Shown: one piece after another, positions 17,420 through 64,000 of the stretch | Position numbering within the stretch: the first letter of the stretch is position 1 | How the letters are laid out: each line of letters opens with the position of its first letter | Assembly (NCBI GenBank): GCA_038496445.1 | Contig: JALMLS010000278.1 | Coordinates: 7,831-71,830, forward strand | Direction of reading: 5' to 3' | From: Trichosphaerium sp. ATCC 40318 | Taxonomy: Eukaryota > Protista > Tubulinea | Length of the DNA stretch: 64,000 nucleotides | The notes under the pieces: generated by a model | The model's input: the letters and a program-made list of their open reading frames with translations, nothing else | The model's database searches: none | Told to the model about the DNA's origin: nothing | Position numbers and translations under genes: made by a program

Positions 17420-17508
17420 CCTAGAACAGCTATGGCGATGTTGGTACTGTGCTCCAACCTGCTTTCAAAAGCACGTGTTTCATTCAAGAAAAGTCTTTTT
17501 TTTTCTAC

Positions 17509-17653
17509 CTGGTAAATACGGTGTTGACGATATCAAGGACAATCATACTGACAGGGCTGCATCTGCATACATTTCTTATCGTGATGCTTGGGTACCTGTT
17601 GTGTTGGCAGGAGGAGATAAGAAAAAGTTTGGTGAATAAACACAACTCAAAGC
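17509..17653 (+). pseudogene. Internal fragment of the GST gene
   Basis: Near-identical to about 23097-23246 (GKYGVDDIKD.HTDRAASAYISYRDAWVPVVLAGGDKKKFGE) with small deletion and stop; no 5' or 3' exons. Confidence 0.9.
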
Positions 17654-17699: not shown

Positions 17700-19892
<2,193 letters not shown>

Positions 19893-20358
19893 CGTTGTAC
19901 TTTGTTGTAAAGTAGCAGAAGTCAGGTAAATCATATTTTTCGTTATTGCCACGTCATGGTTGCGCTGTTGGCAAAAAATTCAATTAATAAAAAGCAAATA
20001 ACAAGTGAAATTTCTAATAATCCGCTATTTACAGTTATAGCACACGTGCTGAATATTTCCTTTTTTTGACCACCTGTGCGCACTAAAAGATAGCTCTACT
20101 ACAGGTTATGCAAACAGACACTTATTGGCTTGTTCGAGTGTCAATGGGTTAATAATAATAGCGAGCTGACTGAAATTACGGAGATGCCAACCGCACGTGT
20201 GACTAACGCCCTTGCACGTACGAACTCCACTTTTTTACATGAAGTATCAAGCGTTACAATATTTTTGTGGGTTTTGATACGCAAAAGCTTGGGTCGTTGT
20301 AGTTCTGATTCACATTGTTACTTTTTTTAAGTGGAAGCTCGGATCACCGTAAATCTGT

Positions 20359-20446
20359 CAGGGTTTACCCTGTCAGTCAGGGCTGAACCCTGAGATAACC
20401 TAAATCCGACCCAGGGTAACCCTGTCTACCAGGGAGGTATCCCCTG
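20359..20446. promoter_or_regulatory. Array of four CAGGG-N(3-7)-CCCTG palindromes upstream of metallothionein copy 1
   Basis: 20359-72 (N4), 20378-92 (N5), 20412-24 (N3), 20430-46 (N7); 45-130 bp before ATG; regulatory role inferred. Confidence 0.7.
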
Positions 20447-20490
20447 ATAGAATTAAAATATCAACAAACTAAACGAACTAACAACACATC

Positions 20491-20871
20491 ATGTCCTCAG
20501 ACGCTTCAGCAGAAATCAAACAACAACAATCTTCTTGCAGCGATTGCAAAGAATCTTGTAAGTCGTGCACCTACAAGACGGACTGTTCTAACTGCACCAA
20601 CTGTAAAGGCCAAGGTACGTATACGCTCGTTCTACATCAAGAGACATGATCTAGCTTCTCCGCTTGAACCTTAAGTTTTCAAATGCTAATTTTAGTTCCT
20701 AGATAACGCAGATTGTTGTTCAAAAGACGCTGACGGCAAAGCAACGTGCAGCTGCGATTGTTGTAAAAAGGTACGAAGAGACAAGACCTGTTTTTTTTTT
20801 GTTCATAAAATTAACTCCGCGTGTAGTGTGTCTGTGATACATGTGATACAAGCAAGTGCGGATGTAAATAA
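20491..20871 (+). CDS. Metallothionein-like protein (78 aa, 18 Cys), copy 1
   Basis: Exons 20491-20614, 20703-20770, 20827-20871 splice in frame (GT-AG) to MSSDASAEIKQQQSSCSDCKESCKSCTYKTDCSNCTNCKGQDNADCCSKDADGKATCSCDCCKKCVCDTCDTSKCGCK. Confidence 0.9.
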
Positions 20872-21068
20872 AGATATACTAAACCCATCTATCGCCATTG
20901 TACAAATCTGTAATCAAGAATAAACATTAATTAAACAAATTGTCAGATGTAATCTTTTAGTTAGATGTCTTTTACTGTGATTCCTACATCGCAACCGAAC
21001 GTAATGTAGACTGTAAAGAACAACGCCAGAAGGGGGAACAATTCGATACGATTTATTGTTAACAAAGC

Positions 21069-22328
21069 TCACTTGGCCCAGTTAATCTCACCTGAGTTTT
21101 TCTTCGTATTCCAAGTGACAGATGTTCCTGAAGCGAATTTACGAGTGTAAACATCTCCTTCAACTGTCGCTGGACCGAGTGGATTTCCAAGAGGCTTTTC
21201 AAATTGAGGATCCCATCCATTACAGCCCAGAATACATCCTTCTTCAACCGCAAGTAAGAACATAATTATATCTCTTTGAGTACAAATAGACTTTGGTGAT
21301 GGTGATACATCCGAATGGTGATCCACAATCTAGAATTTTTAGTTCATTTTGATTATACATTAACGTGTCCTCGTACCATGAAGTATACGTAAATTGCACC
21401 ACTTTTGAAAGCGTTTTGGACGTTTTCTATAATTGCAGATGGTTCTCCTTTAGCACGTGCCTGGACCGTTGTATTGAAAAAAATAAAACCTTCCTTTCCG
21501 AATAGCTCATAAATACCATCCATCAAGAGTTCCTTTCCTTCGTTGTACGCACTCGCAGTAGCTTCTGGTATCTCTCCACATGATAGGTCCCATGTTCTAC
21601 CATCGTTATGTTCGCACAACTGCCTAAAATTCACGTCAGACGTCATCAAACGTTTGTAAAAAAAAAAGAAGAAGCAAAAGAAAAGAAGCTGGAAAGTTCA
21701 GAAGAAGATTTCACCATGCCAAGACATACCAAATGTTTGAAGACTTGTTGTATTGTGCCCGAATGGTAACCTTGTCAGGGAAAACACCATCGACTTTTTT
21801 ATCAGCCAAAAACTTTAACCACATATCACGTGTCTTTTTCTTCCCTTGATCGAATGCGTTTATGCCAGGCATACCGTTGTCATTTTTTATGGCCAACAAT
21901 TTACCGTCAGTCTTAACGACATCTGCACCAATAGCCAATGCCTGTTCGTGTAAACCTATGAATCCAAAGTCGTACAACGTGTTTAAATAGAAAACAACAC
22001 ATAATTTTGGGTTAATCGCCCTTGCTGCGTTAATGGTAGCCTCCTGGTATTTCTCGGCACCGCAAGACGCTTGACAAGGCAGTGGCGGCTTTTTTGTCGC
22101 ATTGGCAAGACATTCGTCCCAACAAGGACCTTCCCACTTTTCTATCACTATCATACGCATTTTAGCGAGCATTTCGAGGCTTTCTTGAGATCTGTGGCTC
22201 GAGTTCTGACCACCGAAATAACCAACAGGTATCGTGGATAAAGAAACATCTGGCGGCACTATACACACCACGTGGATGGCGAATAAAGCGACAAGTATCC
22301 CAGCAATTCGGTTTGTTTGTTGTAACAT
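21069..22328 (-). CDS. Secreted putative glycoside hydrolase (GHL15/GH168-like), copy 1
   Basis: Signal peptide; IVIEKW, RAINPKLCVVFYLNTLYDF, VDGVFPD, C-terminal FLLAVE..KPLGNPLGPA..VYTRKFASGTSV; three exons. Confidence 0.7.
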
Positions 22329-22729
22329 TTGTGTTAACTAAGAAAAGTAGTTCGAATTTATTTGATGTATTTTGCTGGTTTTAAATGTGATTATTCATAC
22401 CAATTACCGTCTCAACGCACGTGGTTTACTGGGTTGTATTAAAACTATACAATTAAAACATTATTTAGAGCTGTACGACGTAAGATGACATTGTACCGCT
22501 TTAAAAGACTGACTTGGGTCTACTTCTAAATAAGGAAAGTGACCTGAGGAGAATCCAAATACCAGCAACTCAAACTAGAATAATAGAATAGAGCTGAGCA
22601 TAGCATGAATACTTCTTATAACGTGGTTAGTACACATTAGTAATGGTTTACCGAGGAAGATTTCTAAATGGAGAATCGAAACATAAAATAGTTGACACTT
22701 CATCAACTCAAAATCAAAAAACAACAACA

Positions 22730-23499
22730 ATGACAACAGCAAATGATAAACTCGGATGTACTCCAAATCTCACTTACATTCAACTTGGTAAACTTGGAGG
22801 ACGTGGTGGTCCAGTCAGGTAGTACAACCTAGTACAACAACCCAACTAAAAACTTGTTTAGATTCTTTATGTTATTGAACGGTATCAAGTTTACTGAAGA
22901 GATTATTGACTTTCCAGGCGATTGGCCTGAAAAAAAGAAAGAGATAATCAACAGTGGATTAAATCCTTTTGGCGGTGTTCCAATATTGCACTTGAATGGT
23001 AAGGTAACTCTTTCGTGTTTAAACAATCTGAAAAAAATGATGAAGGTCTTAACATGTGCGAACATGTACCAATGATAAGATACATGGCAAAGAAACTTGG
23101 TAAATACGGTGTTGACGATATCAAGGACTATCACACTGACAGGGCTGCATCTGCATACATTTCTTATCGTGATGCTTGGGTACCTGTTGTGTTGGCAGGA
23201 GGAGATAAGAAAAAGTTTGGTGAATATCAAAAAACACAACTCAAAGCATTTGACACCATTTTGGGTCAAACTGAGGGTGATTACTTCTCAGGTACAAACA
23301 TACATTGGTTATTATTCAGTGTTAACGCTCTACTACAGGCAAAGAAGTTTCTTTTGCTGACATCTTGGTTGCATCAATGATAAGAGATGTGTCTTTGACT
23401 GTTCCTGATTCTCTTGACCTCAAACCTGTACCTCGTTTGAGCAAGATGTACAATGCTGTTATTTCTCTTGATCCAATCAAGCAATGGATTGACGCCTAA
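22730..23499 (+). CDS. Glutathione S-transferase, copy 1
   Basis: LTYIQLGKLGGRGGPVRFFM..W...K...NPFGGVPIL..EHVPMIRYMAKKLGKYG..YFSG..SFADILVA; three introns. Confidence 0.9.
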
Positions 23500-23632
23500 A
23501 TGCCTCTCCACAAATAAAGTATCAGATTTCAAATAGACTTGTAAGTTAGATGTACTTATGAAGCGCTTGTCTGTACTACAAAATTAATAGCATATTTACA
23601 TGTATGTACATTTTATTGGTCAAGAGAGAGTT

Positions 23633-31347: not shown

Positions 31348-32150
31348 GTATACTATTCGAAACTAATTTCTGATACGTGTGGGTAACGCTCAGCCCGATT
31401 TTTGCAGTTGTACATAAGCACAAAACAAAATAATGTTACAATACTTTAAATAAAAGAATAAATTTCCTATGTCACGCTTGTTTAAATAATAAAAATACTG
31501 CATAGTCCATGTTCCGGGGCATGCTGCGCAGTCATTTATAAACATACGACGCCAAATAAGACATGCAAAAAAGTGGAATTCTTACGTGACGACAGTTTTG
31601 GGCGTATTGGGATCTAGAGACCACGTGCGTTTGTGCCAGGTCCTCAGTTTGTTTATTTATAGTTTTACACTCAGTTCACAGTACTGTGTTTTTTGCGTAT
31701 ACCCTTCACCTGGCTATGTTAGCTCATGTTGGCTCCGCTCCAAGAAAACTAATAAGGTTTTGGCGCGTAGAGTTCAAACGGCTTACTGAACACATGTTTT
31801 AATTTTCCCAAACCTTCAAAACGTTGATGCGAATTGTGATCTGTTTTTATGCAGACTGCTGCGCCTTTTGTAACTAGTTGTGATGGTAATGCCCTACAAA
31901 GACTAGTTTTGGCAACTCACCACTAATACAAAGCTAAAAACACCTACATAGAAAAATACTTGGTTGGATAGAATCTAAGATATCCAAGTTTAAATACAGA
32001 ACGAATTTCAAAACATGCAACAAGCGGAGCACGGTAGAGCCTACCAAGCCTTCTTTTATGCTACCAAAAAGTACGTCAACACATATTCACTTATAGCTGT
32101 AATTGTAACTTTTCCGTACATATAGTATTTTTAAAAATAAAGGTCGAGGA

Positions 32151-32480
32151 CACGTGATAATTTCAAAAGTGGCACTTTTGTAGAGGGAATTCCACCAGGT
32201 CCAATTGGCGAACCAAGGGTTGAAGTTACTTTTTACGTAGACAGTTTGTCAAACCCTTTTATGATACTCTGATTGGCTTATGTTTGGTTTTAGTGAATGG
32301 TGCTAGCTATATTTTTACAGAAGATATCATAAGAAAGGTAGAAGAGGCGGAAGAAAACAAAGTGGCTGATGAAAAGATAAAAGCAAACACAAGAACAAAG
32401 TTCTCAAACTTAAGAGTGCTGCCAAATCAAAACTATTTTTTGGAGATAGTGGCAATGTGTAGATAACTACAAGCTCTAAG
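32151..32480 (+). pseudogene. Decayed 3' fragment of the BiP-like Hsp70
   Basis: Homologous to the reverse complement of 17700-18125 (GIPPGPIGEPR.EVTFYVD, EEAEENKVADEKIKANTR) with intron retained and internal deletions. Confidence 0.9.
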
Positions 32481-35240: not shown

Positions 35241-35624
35241 TTATTTACATCCGCACTTGCTTGTATCACATGTATCACAGACACACTACGCGCGGAGTTA
35301 ATTTGAAGAACCAAAAAAAAAACAGTCTCTTTTCTCTTCGCACCTTTTTACAACAATCGCAGCTGCATGTTGCTTTGCCGTCAGCGTCTTTTGAACAACA
35401 ATCTGCGTTATCTAGGAACTAAAATTAGCATTTGAAAACCTTAAAGTTCAAGCGGAGAAGCTAGATCATGTCTCTTGATGTAGAACGAGTGTATACGTAC
35501 CTTGGCCTTTACAGTTGGTGCAGTTAGAACAGTCCGTCTTGTAGGTGCACGACTTACAAGATTCTTTGCAATCGCTGCAAGAAGATTGTTGTTGTTTGAT
35601 TTCTGCTGAAGCGTCTGAGGACAT
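35241..35624 (-). CDS. Metallothionein-like protein, copy 2
   Basis: Same three exons as copy 1; protein appears identical (one synonymous ACG/ACA difference seen) while introns differ. Confidence 0.9.
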
Positions 35625-35668: not shown

Positions 35669-35862
35669 CAGGGGATACCTCCCTGGTAGACAGGGTTACC
35701 CTGGGTCGGATTTAGGATATCTCAGGGTTCAGCCCTGACTGACAGGGTAAACCCTGACAGATTTACGGTGCTCCAAGCTTCCAAAAAGAGTAACAATGTG
35801 ATTGTAGGATTTGTCAGGGTCCCTCCCTGGTCGACAGGGAAACCCTGACAGAGTGAGCCCTG
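35669..35862. promoter_or_regulatory. Array of six CAGGG-N-CCCTG palindromes plus one degenerate unit upstream of metallothionein copy 2
   Basis: 35669-85, 35691-703, 35723-37, 35743-56, 35815-29, 35835-47, degenerate 35849-62. Confidence 0.7.
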
Positions 35863-36727
35863 CTTTTGCGTATCAAAGCCCATAGATTACGCTTTGATCC
35901 CTTCTTTCATGCTTTGCGTGCCGGAAGGTACTTTGTACGTACACGAAACAACTTCACAAAGGTGATAGGAAAAGCCTGAAATCGCGAAGGTTTTCGTCAG
36001 CTCCTACGCTAATTACGCACATGTGTTATGCTGCAAAGTTTCAAATGAATCTAGTAGAACTCTACGTACGTTCGTTACAATTGACACGTGTTGGGTTGGC
36101 AAATCGGAAACAAATATGCTCAAAAGCATTAGTGATGCTATGAAAACTGTTCGACTTGGAATGACTTTAGGCAAAACGCCTAAACCGAAAAAACCCATTT
36201 TGTTTGGAATTGTCTTTGGTGAGGCGCTTGTTGTATCACACCCATTGCTGCCATAGGATCTTGAACTAACTCATTTTGGACATTGGATTTCGCATTAGTT
36301 TTTTGTTTTATTTGTCAAGCTTGTGAGACGTCTCAATTTTCCTTCACGTAGCGCATTATGTTTACAACCGTACTTGTACTGTTTAGATTAGCAGGTATTG
36401 TAGATCAGGGTAAAGCTGAAAGCTGGAATCAATTTGCTATTGATAAAACAACAATGTTACCTTTAAAGTGGAATAATGGATGGAAAAAAAAGTACAAGGT
36501 AAACGTGATAGATACATTTTTTCTACAACAGCTGTTGTAATGAAATAAACACTAAATGTACTACACTTAACAAATACGTATATAGAGCAGTACTATCATA
36601 GTCTATTGTATCAAGATCTGTTAGTTTGCGTAAACAAACTGAGTTGTAAGATACGCAGTGAAAAACATATTGTTTTACAGATGTTTATTTTACTTCTTTT
36701 TTACAACCTTAGTGGTATAACTACCCC

Positions 36728-61704: not shown

Positions 61705-64000
61705 CTAAAACTCGATAAGGCAAAGGTTAACCTCGCTAGCTAAACGGGTAGGAAACTGCTTGATCAGAACAGTCAACCATTCACGTAACGAGTCAGCGCT
61801 TGGACAAGCTTTCATCTCCGTGAGTAAACGCTGTTGAAGTGTATTACTACGAATGTAGAGGGAACCTCTACCGATGAGCCACTTGAGTTGTTTGTCAAGC
61901 GTTTTTCTGTCAAATTTAGAAGAGGAAGACAGTAAATCCCTCAATAGATCTCTAAGGATCTCGACTCGAGGAGCACGTCTATGTTTACGTGAGTTATGTA
62001 CTTTTTGAATATGTCTAGCTCCCTGCGCCTTGATGCTTTTAAGCTTGGTAGAGAACTCATCTACTGGCGGTAAATCCGGGAGTGCTTTTTCATTTTCAAC
62101 ATAATTGTCACTCTTATCCCCATCAGAAATAGGAGGAGTGACCACACTACGTTTCAAATAAGCATCTCTAGCCATAGTACGACTAACTTGACCAAGTGGT
62201 CTTAGGTAAGAATCAATAAACGGCTTGAGTCGGTCAACATTAACCACACGTGACATTTGACTGTCAGCTGGTAAATCTAACATGAAATTGTTAGGACCTG
62301 TTTGTTGCAAAATACTATAAGGGCCGTGCCACTTCATAGTAAGTTTGCTTTTTTGATCTTTTTTGAGGGCTGGAACCCATAACCAGACAAGTTGACCTGG
62401 TTTATATTGAACTGCGCGACGATGCTTGTTATAGTATCTCGCTTGCTCACGTTTCGCCTTGAGTATATTTGCTTTAGCCAATTGGTAAGCGTATTTCAAG
62501 CGATGAGCTAACCTATCTGCCCAATCACCGATCTTGTATTTATCAGGCATTGAAACTCTGATATCATCTGAGACCAAGTCGATGGGGAGTATAGGCTTTC
62601 TACCGAACACCAACTGATAGGGTGTATGCTGAGTCGCATGATGGTAAGCGGTCCTATATGCAAAGAGCGCATAAGGTAACCAATAGTCCCAATCACTTTG
62701 TTGCTCATTAACAAACGCTCTGATAACCTCAATCAAAGTGTGATTGAATCGTTCAGTTTGACCATCAGTCTGAGGATGGTAGGCGGTAGTTTGCCTTTTG
62801 TCAATGTGCAGTGTGTTGTAGACTTTGTTTGAGAACTCGGAGACAAACTCACCCCCTTGATCAGTCAATACCTGTTTAGGAATACCGTAACGAAAGCAGA
62901 ATTCAGTTACAAATTTGTAGGAGACCTCAGAGGGATCTTTACTTGTAATTGCAAATGCCTCAACCCACTTTGTAAAGTGATCTGTGAGCACCAGAAGGTA
63001 TTTATTCCCTTTCGGTGTTTCAGGTAACGGCCCTACCAAATCCATTGCGATTACCTGGAGTGGCTCAAGTACGGCAAACGGTACAGCAAAACCTCCTTTT
63101 GGTAAACGTGCTTTTTTATTTCGCTGACAGGTGTAACACGAGCGGCACCATTCACGAGTATCAGCGTACATATGAGGCCAATAAAACCTTTCAGCTAATC
63201 GCTCATAGGTTTTAATAAAGCCAAAATGCCCTGAGAAAGGCATGTCATGACACTGTCTAAGCACAACACTTCGCATGGCATGGGGTACTACTATTTGAAA
63301 GATCAGGTTACTACCATTTGGATCCGCTGCATCAACAACTTTCTTAACATGGTATAACATGCCAGTGTTAGCGTCAATGGTGAGCTGTCTCGCATTGGTA
63401 ATAAAAGTTTCTTCTTTGAAACCATGTCTACGCCTGAGATGCGTAGGGATCCGTCCTCCTTCCAGATATTCAATGAATACTGTGAGGTTAGGATCTTGCC
63501 TTTGCAGGTGAGCCCAGTTATATACTGGTTTGTGTTTAGTAACCAAATTGCAAATTTTGGCAATTGGTTTTCTAGACAAAGCATCGGCGTCGGTGTGATT
63601 GACACCTTTCTTGTATACAACGTTAAAGTCGTACTGTTGTACTTCCATTAACCAACGTGCTACTACATCTTTAGGATTCTTGAGAGAATTTAAATATTTG
63701 AGAGGTTTGTGATCGGAATAGACAATGAGTTTAAATTGAGAAAAAGAGATATAACCCTTGAACTCTCTCAGCGCCATCACAATACCCAAACATTCTCTGT
63801 CAATTGTAGAATAGCGTCGTTGGGTGTCAGAGAAGGTATAGCTATGATAGGCTATGACGTGCTGCTTCCCTTTCACTCGTTGCACAAGAGCACTGCCACA
63901 AGCGCGACCAGAAGCATCAACATGGATCTCAAATGGTAAGTTGAAGTCTGGATGTTGCAGTATAGGGGGCGTGATGAGAGCCCGTTGAACGTAATTCGAA
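61705..64000 (-). CDS. Gypsy Pol: RT connection/RNase H, HHCC zinc finger, DDE integrase, GPY/F motif, C-terminal extension
   Basis: YSTIDRECLGIV, SDHKPL, ADALSR, H..GH..CRSCYTC, MDLVGP, TDQGGEF, YHPQTDGQTERFN, WHGPY; uninterrupted ORF. Confidence 0.95.
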   Translation of the reverse strand, partial: SNYVQRALITPPILQHPDFNLPFEIHVDASGRACGSALVQRVKGKQHVIAYHSYTFSDTQRRYSTIDRECLGIVMALREFKGYISFSQFKLIVYSDHKPLKYLNSLKNPKDVVARWLMEVQQYDFNVVYKKGVNHTDADALSRKPIAKICNLVTKHKPVYNWAHLQRQDPNLTVFIEYLEGGRIPTHLRRRHGFKEETFITNARQLTIDANTGMLYHVKKVVDAADPNGSNLIFQIVVPHAMRSVVLRQCHDMPFSGHFGFIKTYERLAERFYWPHMYADTREWCRSCYTCQRNKKARLPKGGFAVPFAVLEPLQVIAMDLVGPLPETPKGNKYLLVLTDHFTKWVEAFAITSKDPSEVSYKFVTEFCFRYGIPKQVLTDQGGEFVSEFSNKVYNTLHIDKRQTTAYHPQTDGQTERFNHTLIEVIRAFVNEQQSDWDYWLPYALFAYRTAYHHATQHTPYQLVFGRKPILPIDLVSDDIRVSMPDKYKIGDWADRLAHRLKYAYQLAKANILKAKREQARYYNKHRRAVQYKPGQLVWLWVPALKKDQKSKLTMKWHGPYSILQQTGPNNFMLDLPADSQMSRVVNVDRLKPFIDSYLRPLGQVSRTMARDAYLKRSVVTPPISDGDKSDNYVENEKALPDLPPVDEFSTKLKSIKAQGARHIQKVHNSRKHRRAPRVEILRDLLRDLLSSSSKFDRKTLDKQLKWLIGRGSLYIRSNTLQQRLLTEMKACPSADSLREWLTVLIKQFPTRLASEVNLCLIEF

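Follow-up and report, generated by a model that had tools for sequence, protein, structure and literature searches.

The locus carries a small gene for a metallothionein-like protein, split into three exons and preceded by an array of palindromes built from the pentamers CAGGG and CCCTG, and both the gene and its array recur in inverted orientation elsewhere in the window (the whole stretch of DNA analysed, 64,000 nucleotides); the coordinates are collected in Table 1. The existence of the gene, its splicing and its expression are confirmed. It had originally been predicted that three small exons join here into a 78-aa protein that has 18 Cys and one aromatic residue but no His, and the spliced transcript on which that prediction depended was found: the GT..AG joints are present in contigs of public runs, in which the intron skips are exact, both introns being skipped in two runs (X4 and X6) and intron 2 in two more (X1 and X12). 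Over exon 1, coverage by RNA-type contigs of public runs extends from 20476/20480 to 20612. The run type itself is a software guess, and the runs were taken as RNA because of the spliced form and the presence of a cDNA adapter. A second AG lies in frame 9 nt 3' of the intron 1 acceptor (20703-20711), and its use would yield a form shorter by 3 residues; in the public-run contigs the upstream acceptor alone is used.

Table 1. Features of the metallothionein-like gene, its upstream array and the second copy (positions are those of the window)
Feature	Position	Strand	Basis or remark
Upstream island, TTTTG-N5-CAAAA (TG-N5-CA geometry)	20272..20288		16/16 between copies, flanks unrelated
Unit A, CAGGG-N4-CCCTG-N5-CAGGG-N5-CCCTG	20359..20392		-96 to -63 from start site
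Unit B, CAGGG-N3-CCCTG-N5-CAGGG-N7-CCCTG	20412..20446		-43 to -9 from start site
Probable transcription start (~20455) and A/C-rich 5'UTR	20455..20490	+	template-switch adapter, X1, one contig
Exon 1, metallothionein-like gene, ATG at 20491	20491..20614	+	7 Cys, CxxC clusters
Intron 1, 88 nt, GT..AG	20615..20702	+	88-nt skip joint in X4, X6
Exon 2, CC and CxCxCC	20703..20770	+	sequence, run contigs
Intron 2, 56 nt, GT..AG	20771..20826	+	56-nt skip joint in X1, X4, X6, X12
Exon 3, CxCxxC, CxC and stop	20827..20871	+	sequence, run contigs
AATAAA, probable polyadenylation signal	20919..20924	+	sequence; X6 contig ends at 20919
Gene copy 2, exons 35624-35501, 35411-35344, 35285-35241	35241..35624	-	identical protein
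Units B and A, copy 2	35669..35756		motif scan
Unit C, CAGGG-N3-CCCTG-N5-CAGGG-N5-CCCTG, copy 2 only	35815..35847		motif scan
Extra half-site and conserved upstream island, copy 2	35858..35878		copy comparison

The 5' end of the mRNA is marked in a single X1 contig, probably from a copy-2-like transcript, in which the loose end before 20455 matches a template-switch adapter in its 3' part, presumably that of the SMART system. Both kinds of gene copy seem to be transcribed, since an X1 contig carries the 3'UTR indels of copy 2 and an X4 contig is without the copy 2 insertion. A minor contig with the copy 2 base at 20398 spans the array at ~2% of the main depth and may represent DNA or an upstream transcript.

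The joined exons encode a protein of 78 aa and 8.2 kDa (pI 5.2) with 18 Cys (23%), no His and a Tyr as the only aromatic residue. The Cys residues, divided 7 and 11 between residues 1-41 and 42-78, are spaced as CxxCxxxCxxC-x5-CxxCxxC-x7-CC-x9-CxCxCC-xx-CxCxxC-x4-CxC, so that the predicted succession of CxxC, CC, CxCxCC, CxCxxC and CxC clusters is confirmed from the joined exons. The N-terminus is hydrophilic and, as read from the sequence, is without a signal peptide; the hydrophilic N-terminus disfavours a secreted disulfide-bonded peptide. Metallothioneins are characterized by a mass of <10 kDa and about 18-23 Cys in CxC, CC and CxxC clusters (PMC1808422). Of the features expected of the family, the size, the number and clustering of Cys, the scarcity of aromatic residues and His, a cytosolic character and a spliced mRNA are present, and the product is probably a cytosolic metallothionein of an amoeba-type protist. 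Composition, the absent signal peptide and the splice joints uphold the original prediction as far as a spliced, expressed, metallothionein-like protein is concerned, and metal binding is the part of it that we infer: judging by its CC and CxxC clusters and its 7+11 split, the protein would probably bind ~6 divalent ions of the Zn/Cd type, an estimate that leans on what is generally known of 18-Cys metallothioneins. Searches of Pfam, PDB, the ESM Atlas and large protein collections with exon 1 or exon 2, which as single short exons are weak queries, returned no relative, and the same was true of protein searches with an alternative exon 1 query, the unspliced reading frame (20491-20646, 52 aa), which continues into intron 1 and admits 78-aa proteins by length. 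A search of the locus against Rfam gave no match. Two Cys-rich proteins from a representative protein library proved to be unrelated to the metallothionein exons.

Directly upstream of the gene, all four of the predicted CAGGG-N3-7-CCCTG palindromes were located, at 20359-20372 (N4), 20378-20392 (N5), 20412-20424 (N3) and 20430-20446 (N7), and together they span -96 to -9 relative to the start at ~20455. Because the adapter-marked start, seen in one contig, lies 3' of all four, the array is promoter DNA and not 5'UTR, which decides between the two placements that had been considered and rules out 5'UTR hairpins for the main mRNA. The prediction that the motif is restricted to the two metallothionein copies also held: in the 64-kb window CAGGG-N2-10-CCCTG has 10 matches against 0.05 expected, and all 10 lie at these copies, while allowing one mismatch adds matches only inside the copy 2 array. 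Among 5-mers, CAGGG/CCCTG forms the densest cluster in the 64-kb window (8 in <100 bp, the runner-up having 6). No TATA consensus was found in the metallothionein promoter.

Inspection of the spacers leads to a better parsing of the array than one based on single palindromes. The inner spacers are variable (3, 4, 5 and 7), within the range of 3-7 originally described, but the geometry that stays constant is that between neighbouring palindromes, where 3/3 junctions read CCCTG-N5-CAGGG, with the spacers TCAGT, TCTAC and TCGAC. The array is made up of units of 33-35 bp, each with four half-sites in alternating orientation and centred on CCCTG-N5-CAGGG; units A and B are found in both copies and unit C is confined to copy 2. 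When units A, B and C are aligned, the pentamer columns are invariant (20/20) as opposed to 8/26 of the other columns (Fisher p 6e-7, a value that is inflated, since the pentamers served to define the units). Tandem copies that evolve neutrally are expected to decay evenly, and selective retention of the pentamers is supported. The units probably arose through tandem duplication, and gain or loss of a whole unit is possible, as with unit C. The only other conserved island upstream, at 20272-20288 with the 16 identical bp at 20273-20288, contains a word of the form YYYTG-N5-CARRR, a pattern that was picked after seeing the data and that occurs 12 times in the window against 5.6 expected; 7 of these words lie at the two promoters, and the 5 elsewhere equal the background of 5.6.

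The second copy belongs to an inverted duplication of 3.3 kb (20310-23510 against 35801-32543; 88% identity by blastn within the window), and the two metallothionein copies are therefore dependent evidence. The motif had been noted at this copy before and is indeed present there, but as six palindromes rather than four and, owing to the inverted duplication, as no independent support. The duplicated block holds the metallothionein gene, a GHL15-like glycoside hydrolase gene and a GST-like gene, with exons 92-100% identical and intergenic DNA 55-76% identical. Between copies, array identity is 109/110 against 91.5% for the pooled introns (p 6e-4), yet intron 1 alone reaches 86/88, so that the likeness of the arrays can be explained by, and may reflect, gene conversion. 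The palindrome motif is absent from the GST, hydrolase and Hsp70 promoters of the same cassette in the window, and the idea of an element shared by a stress cassette was rejected on this ground. Upstream of copy 2 there is no counterpart of the Hsp70 gene that lies head-to-head with the first copy, which assigns the array to the metallothionein gene.

The cassette and its surroundings show further features. Older rearrangements of the cassette are marked by a third, isolated GST exon fragment (17507-17653) and by partial Hsp70 3' duplicates (17750-18126 against 32149-32448). The divergent Hsp70 gene itself (~19760-17700, - strand), of which the read check in public runs covered the far 5' end only, encodes a short C-terminus ending in FNEL, possibly an ER retention signal. 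The hydrolase (21050-22328, - strand) is a secreted GHL15-like protein with relatives of about 35-65% identity that include Picozoa and eukaryote contigs; three tandem copies of a homologue lie on one long contig, and the copy 2 hydrolase shares 99.3% identity with a transcript from JGI sample 3300016894. On the long contigs with homologues of this neighbouring hydrolase, neither an array nor a convincing metallothionein exon was seen.

Our working hypothesis, which on balance we consider probable, is that the metallothionein gene is driven by a dimeric factor bound to the fixed N5 pair in response to metal or to a metal-linked stress signal. A dimeric factor at the N5 core is deemed likely because the central CCCTG-N5-CAGGG is the sole fixed geometry of the array. 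According to this hypothesis, a sequence-specific dimeric transcription factor would occupy the central CCCTG-N5-CAGGG, the flanking half-sites, about one per helical turn, would contribute cooperative occupancy, and the outcome would be strong, probably metal- or stress-inducible transcription starting at ~20455. That the array presumably activates rather than represses has to be set against the position of the nearest palindrome, which ends 9 bp before the start site, unusually close for an activator. It is plausible that the palindromes are a metal-response element. The further proposal, that CCCTG-N5-CAGGG is a true metal-response element whose sensing factor is unrelated to MTF-1, Ace1/Mac1, Zap1 and CRR1, is a tentative one that we regard as possible but doubtful; if true, it would mean that metal sensing was invented independently in eukaryotes and that, as far as the searched literature shows, no metal-response element had previously been defined in an amoeba.

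The closest parallel to such an arrangement comes from Tetrahymena, where the motif MTCM1 is clustered, metallothionein-specific, present in both orientations, tandemly duplicated and better conserved than the surrounding repeat (PMC1808422). As in Tetrahymena family 7a, a protist metallothionein with CC clusters is here combined with an upstream motif that has these same properties (clustering, specificity to the gene, both orientations, tandem multiplication and conservation above that of its surroundings), although the amoeba protein differs in its length of 78 aa, in having CC but no CCC and in the CxxC clusters of its N-terminal half. The motifs also differ, that of Tetrahymena being the AP-1-like TGANTCA and that described here CCCTG-N5-CAGGG, and MTCM1 has cross-species and binding support. 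The resemblance of MTCM1 to AP-1 sites, and its later association with AP-1 bZIP factors, a general stress class (PMC6205968), lend some weight to the view that the array is functional but serves a factor of a known class, devoted to general stress or high output, and not a dedicated metal sensor. As to anatomy this view overlaps with our working hypothesis, and it parts from it over the signal. The metallothionein contigs are, in addition, far deeper than those of the neighbouring genes in X1 and X6, two runs with unrecorded culture conditions; depth of this kind reflects expression poorly. Nevertheless, we consider a general stress factor unlikely, as the motif is missing from the other genes of the stress cassette (GST, hydrolase and Hsp70) and neither promoter has an AP-1 or Yap site (TGA[CG]TCA is absent from both promoters and TGANTCA from the array units); an HSE-like word occurs far upstream in copy 1 only.

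Several proximal copies of a motif in front of a small Cys-rich gene are likewise a feature of animal MT genes (MRE/MTF-1) and of yeast CUP1 (Ace1), and in this respect the dimeric-factor hypothesis calls for a kind of system that is known. The word itself appears to be new. The claim that it differs from known elements was sustained, with no match among the MTF-1 MRE, Ace1, Mac1, Zap1, AP-1 and Yap elements tested: the proximal promoters of both copies contain no TGCRCNC, Ace1-core or Mac1 word, and the yeast Zap1 ZRE (ACCYYNAAGGT) has no match in the promoters. Copy 1 has a lone TGCRCNC palindrome, ~410 bp before its ATG, to which nothing corresponds in copy 2; the GTAC words are all located further upstream and are not the same in the two copies.

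A more specific likeness is that to the C2H2 factor ZafA, in that CAGGGT, found in 7/13 half-sites, is an allowed form of the ZafA core CARGGT; ZafA acts as a repressor of zrcA, a gene for zinc detoxification (PMC6070888). A Zap1/ZafA-like repressor could thus be envisaged that, in zinc shortage, sits on the CAGGGT half-sites and obstructs the core promoter, and that releases the gene as zinc rises; one half-site scores 15/15 on the 15-mer consensus, and the sites cover -96 to -9. This explanation appears quite unlikely to us, since what is invariant here is CAGGG rather than CARGGT, the essential final T is missing from 6/13 half-sites and the commoner CAAGGT occurs in none. ZafA sites are, moreover, single motifs, whereas the half-sites of the array are paired at a fixed N5 spacing, and consensus matches that are as good (14-15/15) are found elsewhere in the window.

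It might also be argued that the units have no regulatory role, being ends or subterminal repeats left by CAGGG-ended DNA transposons and homogenized through recent gene conversion, for the whole block of unit C is either there or missing and the conservation of intron 1 equals that of the array. We attach little likelihood to this argument. The units are without flanking target-site duplication, the window yielded neither a dispersed copy nor an element that ends in CAGGG and has extended terminal repeats, every window copy lies at the start of one gene, and the pentamers persist while the spacers diverge. An origin from a transposon followed by co-option would fit a role of the array in the metallothionein promoter. 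Still less probable is that the array works through DNA or RNA structure (a cruciform, hairpin or G-quadruplex) and not as a protein-binding word, even though the region folds far better than its shuffles, with z at -4.15 (-3.3 for unit C), and long hairpins can be formed by both unit A and unit C: the main mRNA begins 3' of the array, an identical pentamer in every arm is unneeded for a structural role, and folding is expected of any palindromic site. A G-quadruplex was rejected, the canonical spacing being absent.

Returning to the dimeric factor that we favour, symmetric half-sites at a fixed spacing are also seen in Zn2Cys6 sites (AflR TCG-N5-CGA, PMC12501005), and a multi-exon Zn2Cys6 gene (PF00172, E 2e-11) lies beside the edge of the duplicated cassette, from 17419 to ~15160 on the - strand. 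Its product has the loop CRRSHAKC, which is followed by a coiled-coil-like region and, towards the end, by a His-rich CPHHMH stretch, and its middle exons gave no Pfam or Atlas match. The half-sites of Zn2Cys6 factors are of the CG/CGG type (PMC12501005), and because such factors anchor on CG and the pentamers here contain none, the Zn2Cys6 protein is only a weak candidate, and a very improbable one, for the factor acting on the array. The gene, ~3 kb from the array, is outside the duplicated block, and nothing ties it to the array.

Searches for related arrays detected no related promoter from other species in the metagenome, bacterial or viral collections. A metagenome scan with the four-half-site pattern yielded at least 118 loci, mostly prokaryotic-looking REP-like or tandem repeats, and among the metagenome loci listed there was neither similarity to the amoeba locus nor a convincing metallothionein. 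Ga0207102 and other contigs carry REP-like palindrome families of the form CAGGG-Nx-CCCTG-N5-CAGGG-Nx-CCCTG, in many copies in one sample and unrelated to the array. An exact 23-mer match in bacterial genomes lies inside bacterial coding sequence and was attributed to chance, and the viral matches are unrelated, the best one lying inside a phage terminase-like gene. Neither the motif nor a characterized amoeba metallothionein promoter is described in the literature searched, which included few subscription journals.

To our knowledge, each of the eukaryotic lineages studied so far has a different factor at its metallothionein promoters. For amoebae, the searched literature holds metallothioneins as database predictions only (PMC7216689) and no description of a metallothionein metal-response element. 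The present locus offers a short bait, some 100 bp in length and with its start site mapped, that is sufficient for a factor pull-down. Metal sensing in amoebae would thereby become testable, which bears on the handling of zinc and copper during the digestion of bacteria.

Two observations concern the remainder of the window. A reading frame of a Ty3/gypsy-type retrotransposon, with RNase H and integrase, occupies 61705-63885 on the - strand, and the word CACGTG occurs 69 times in the whole window.
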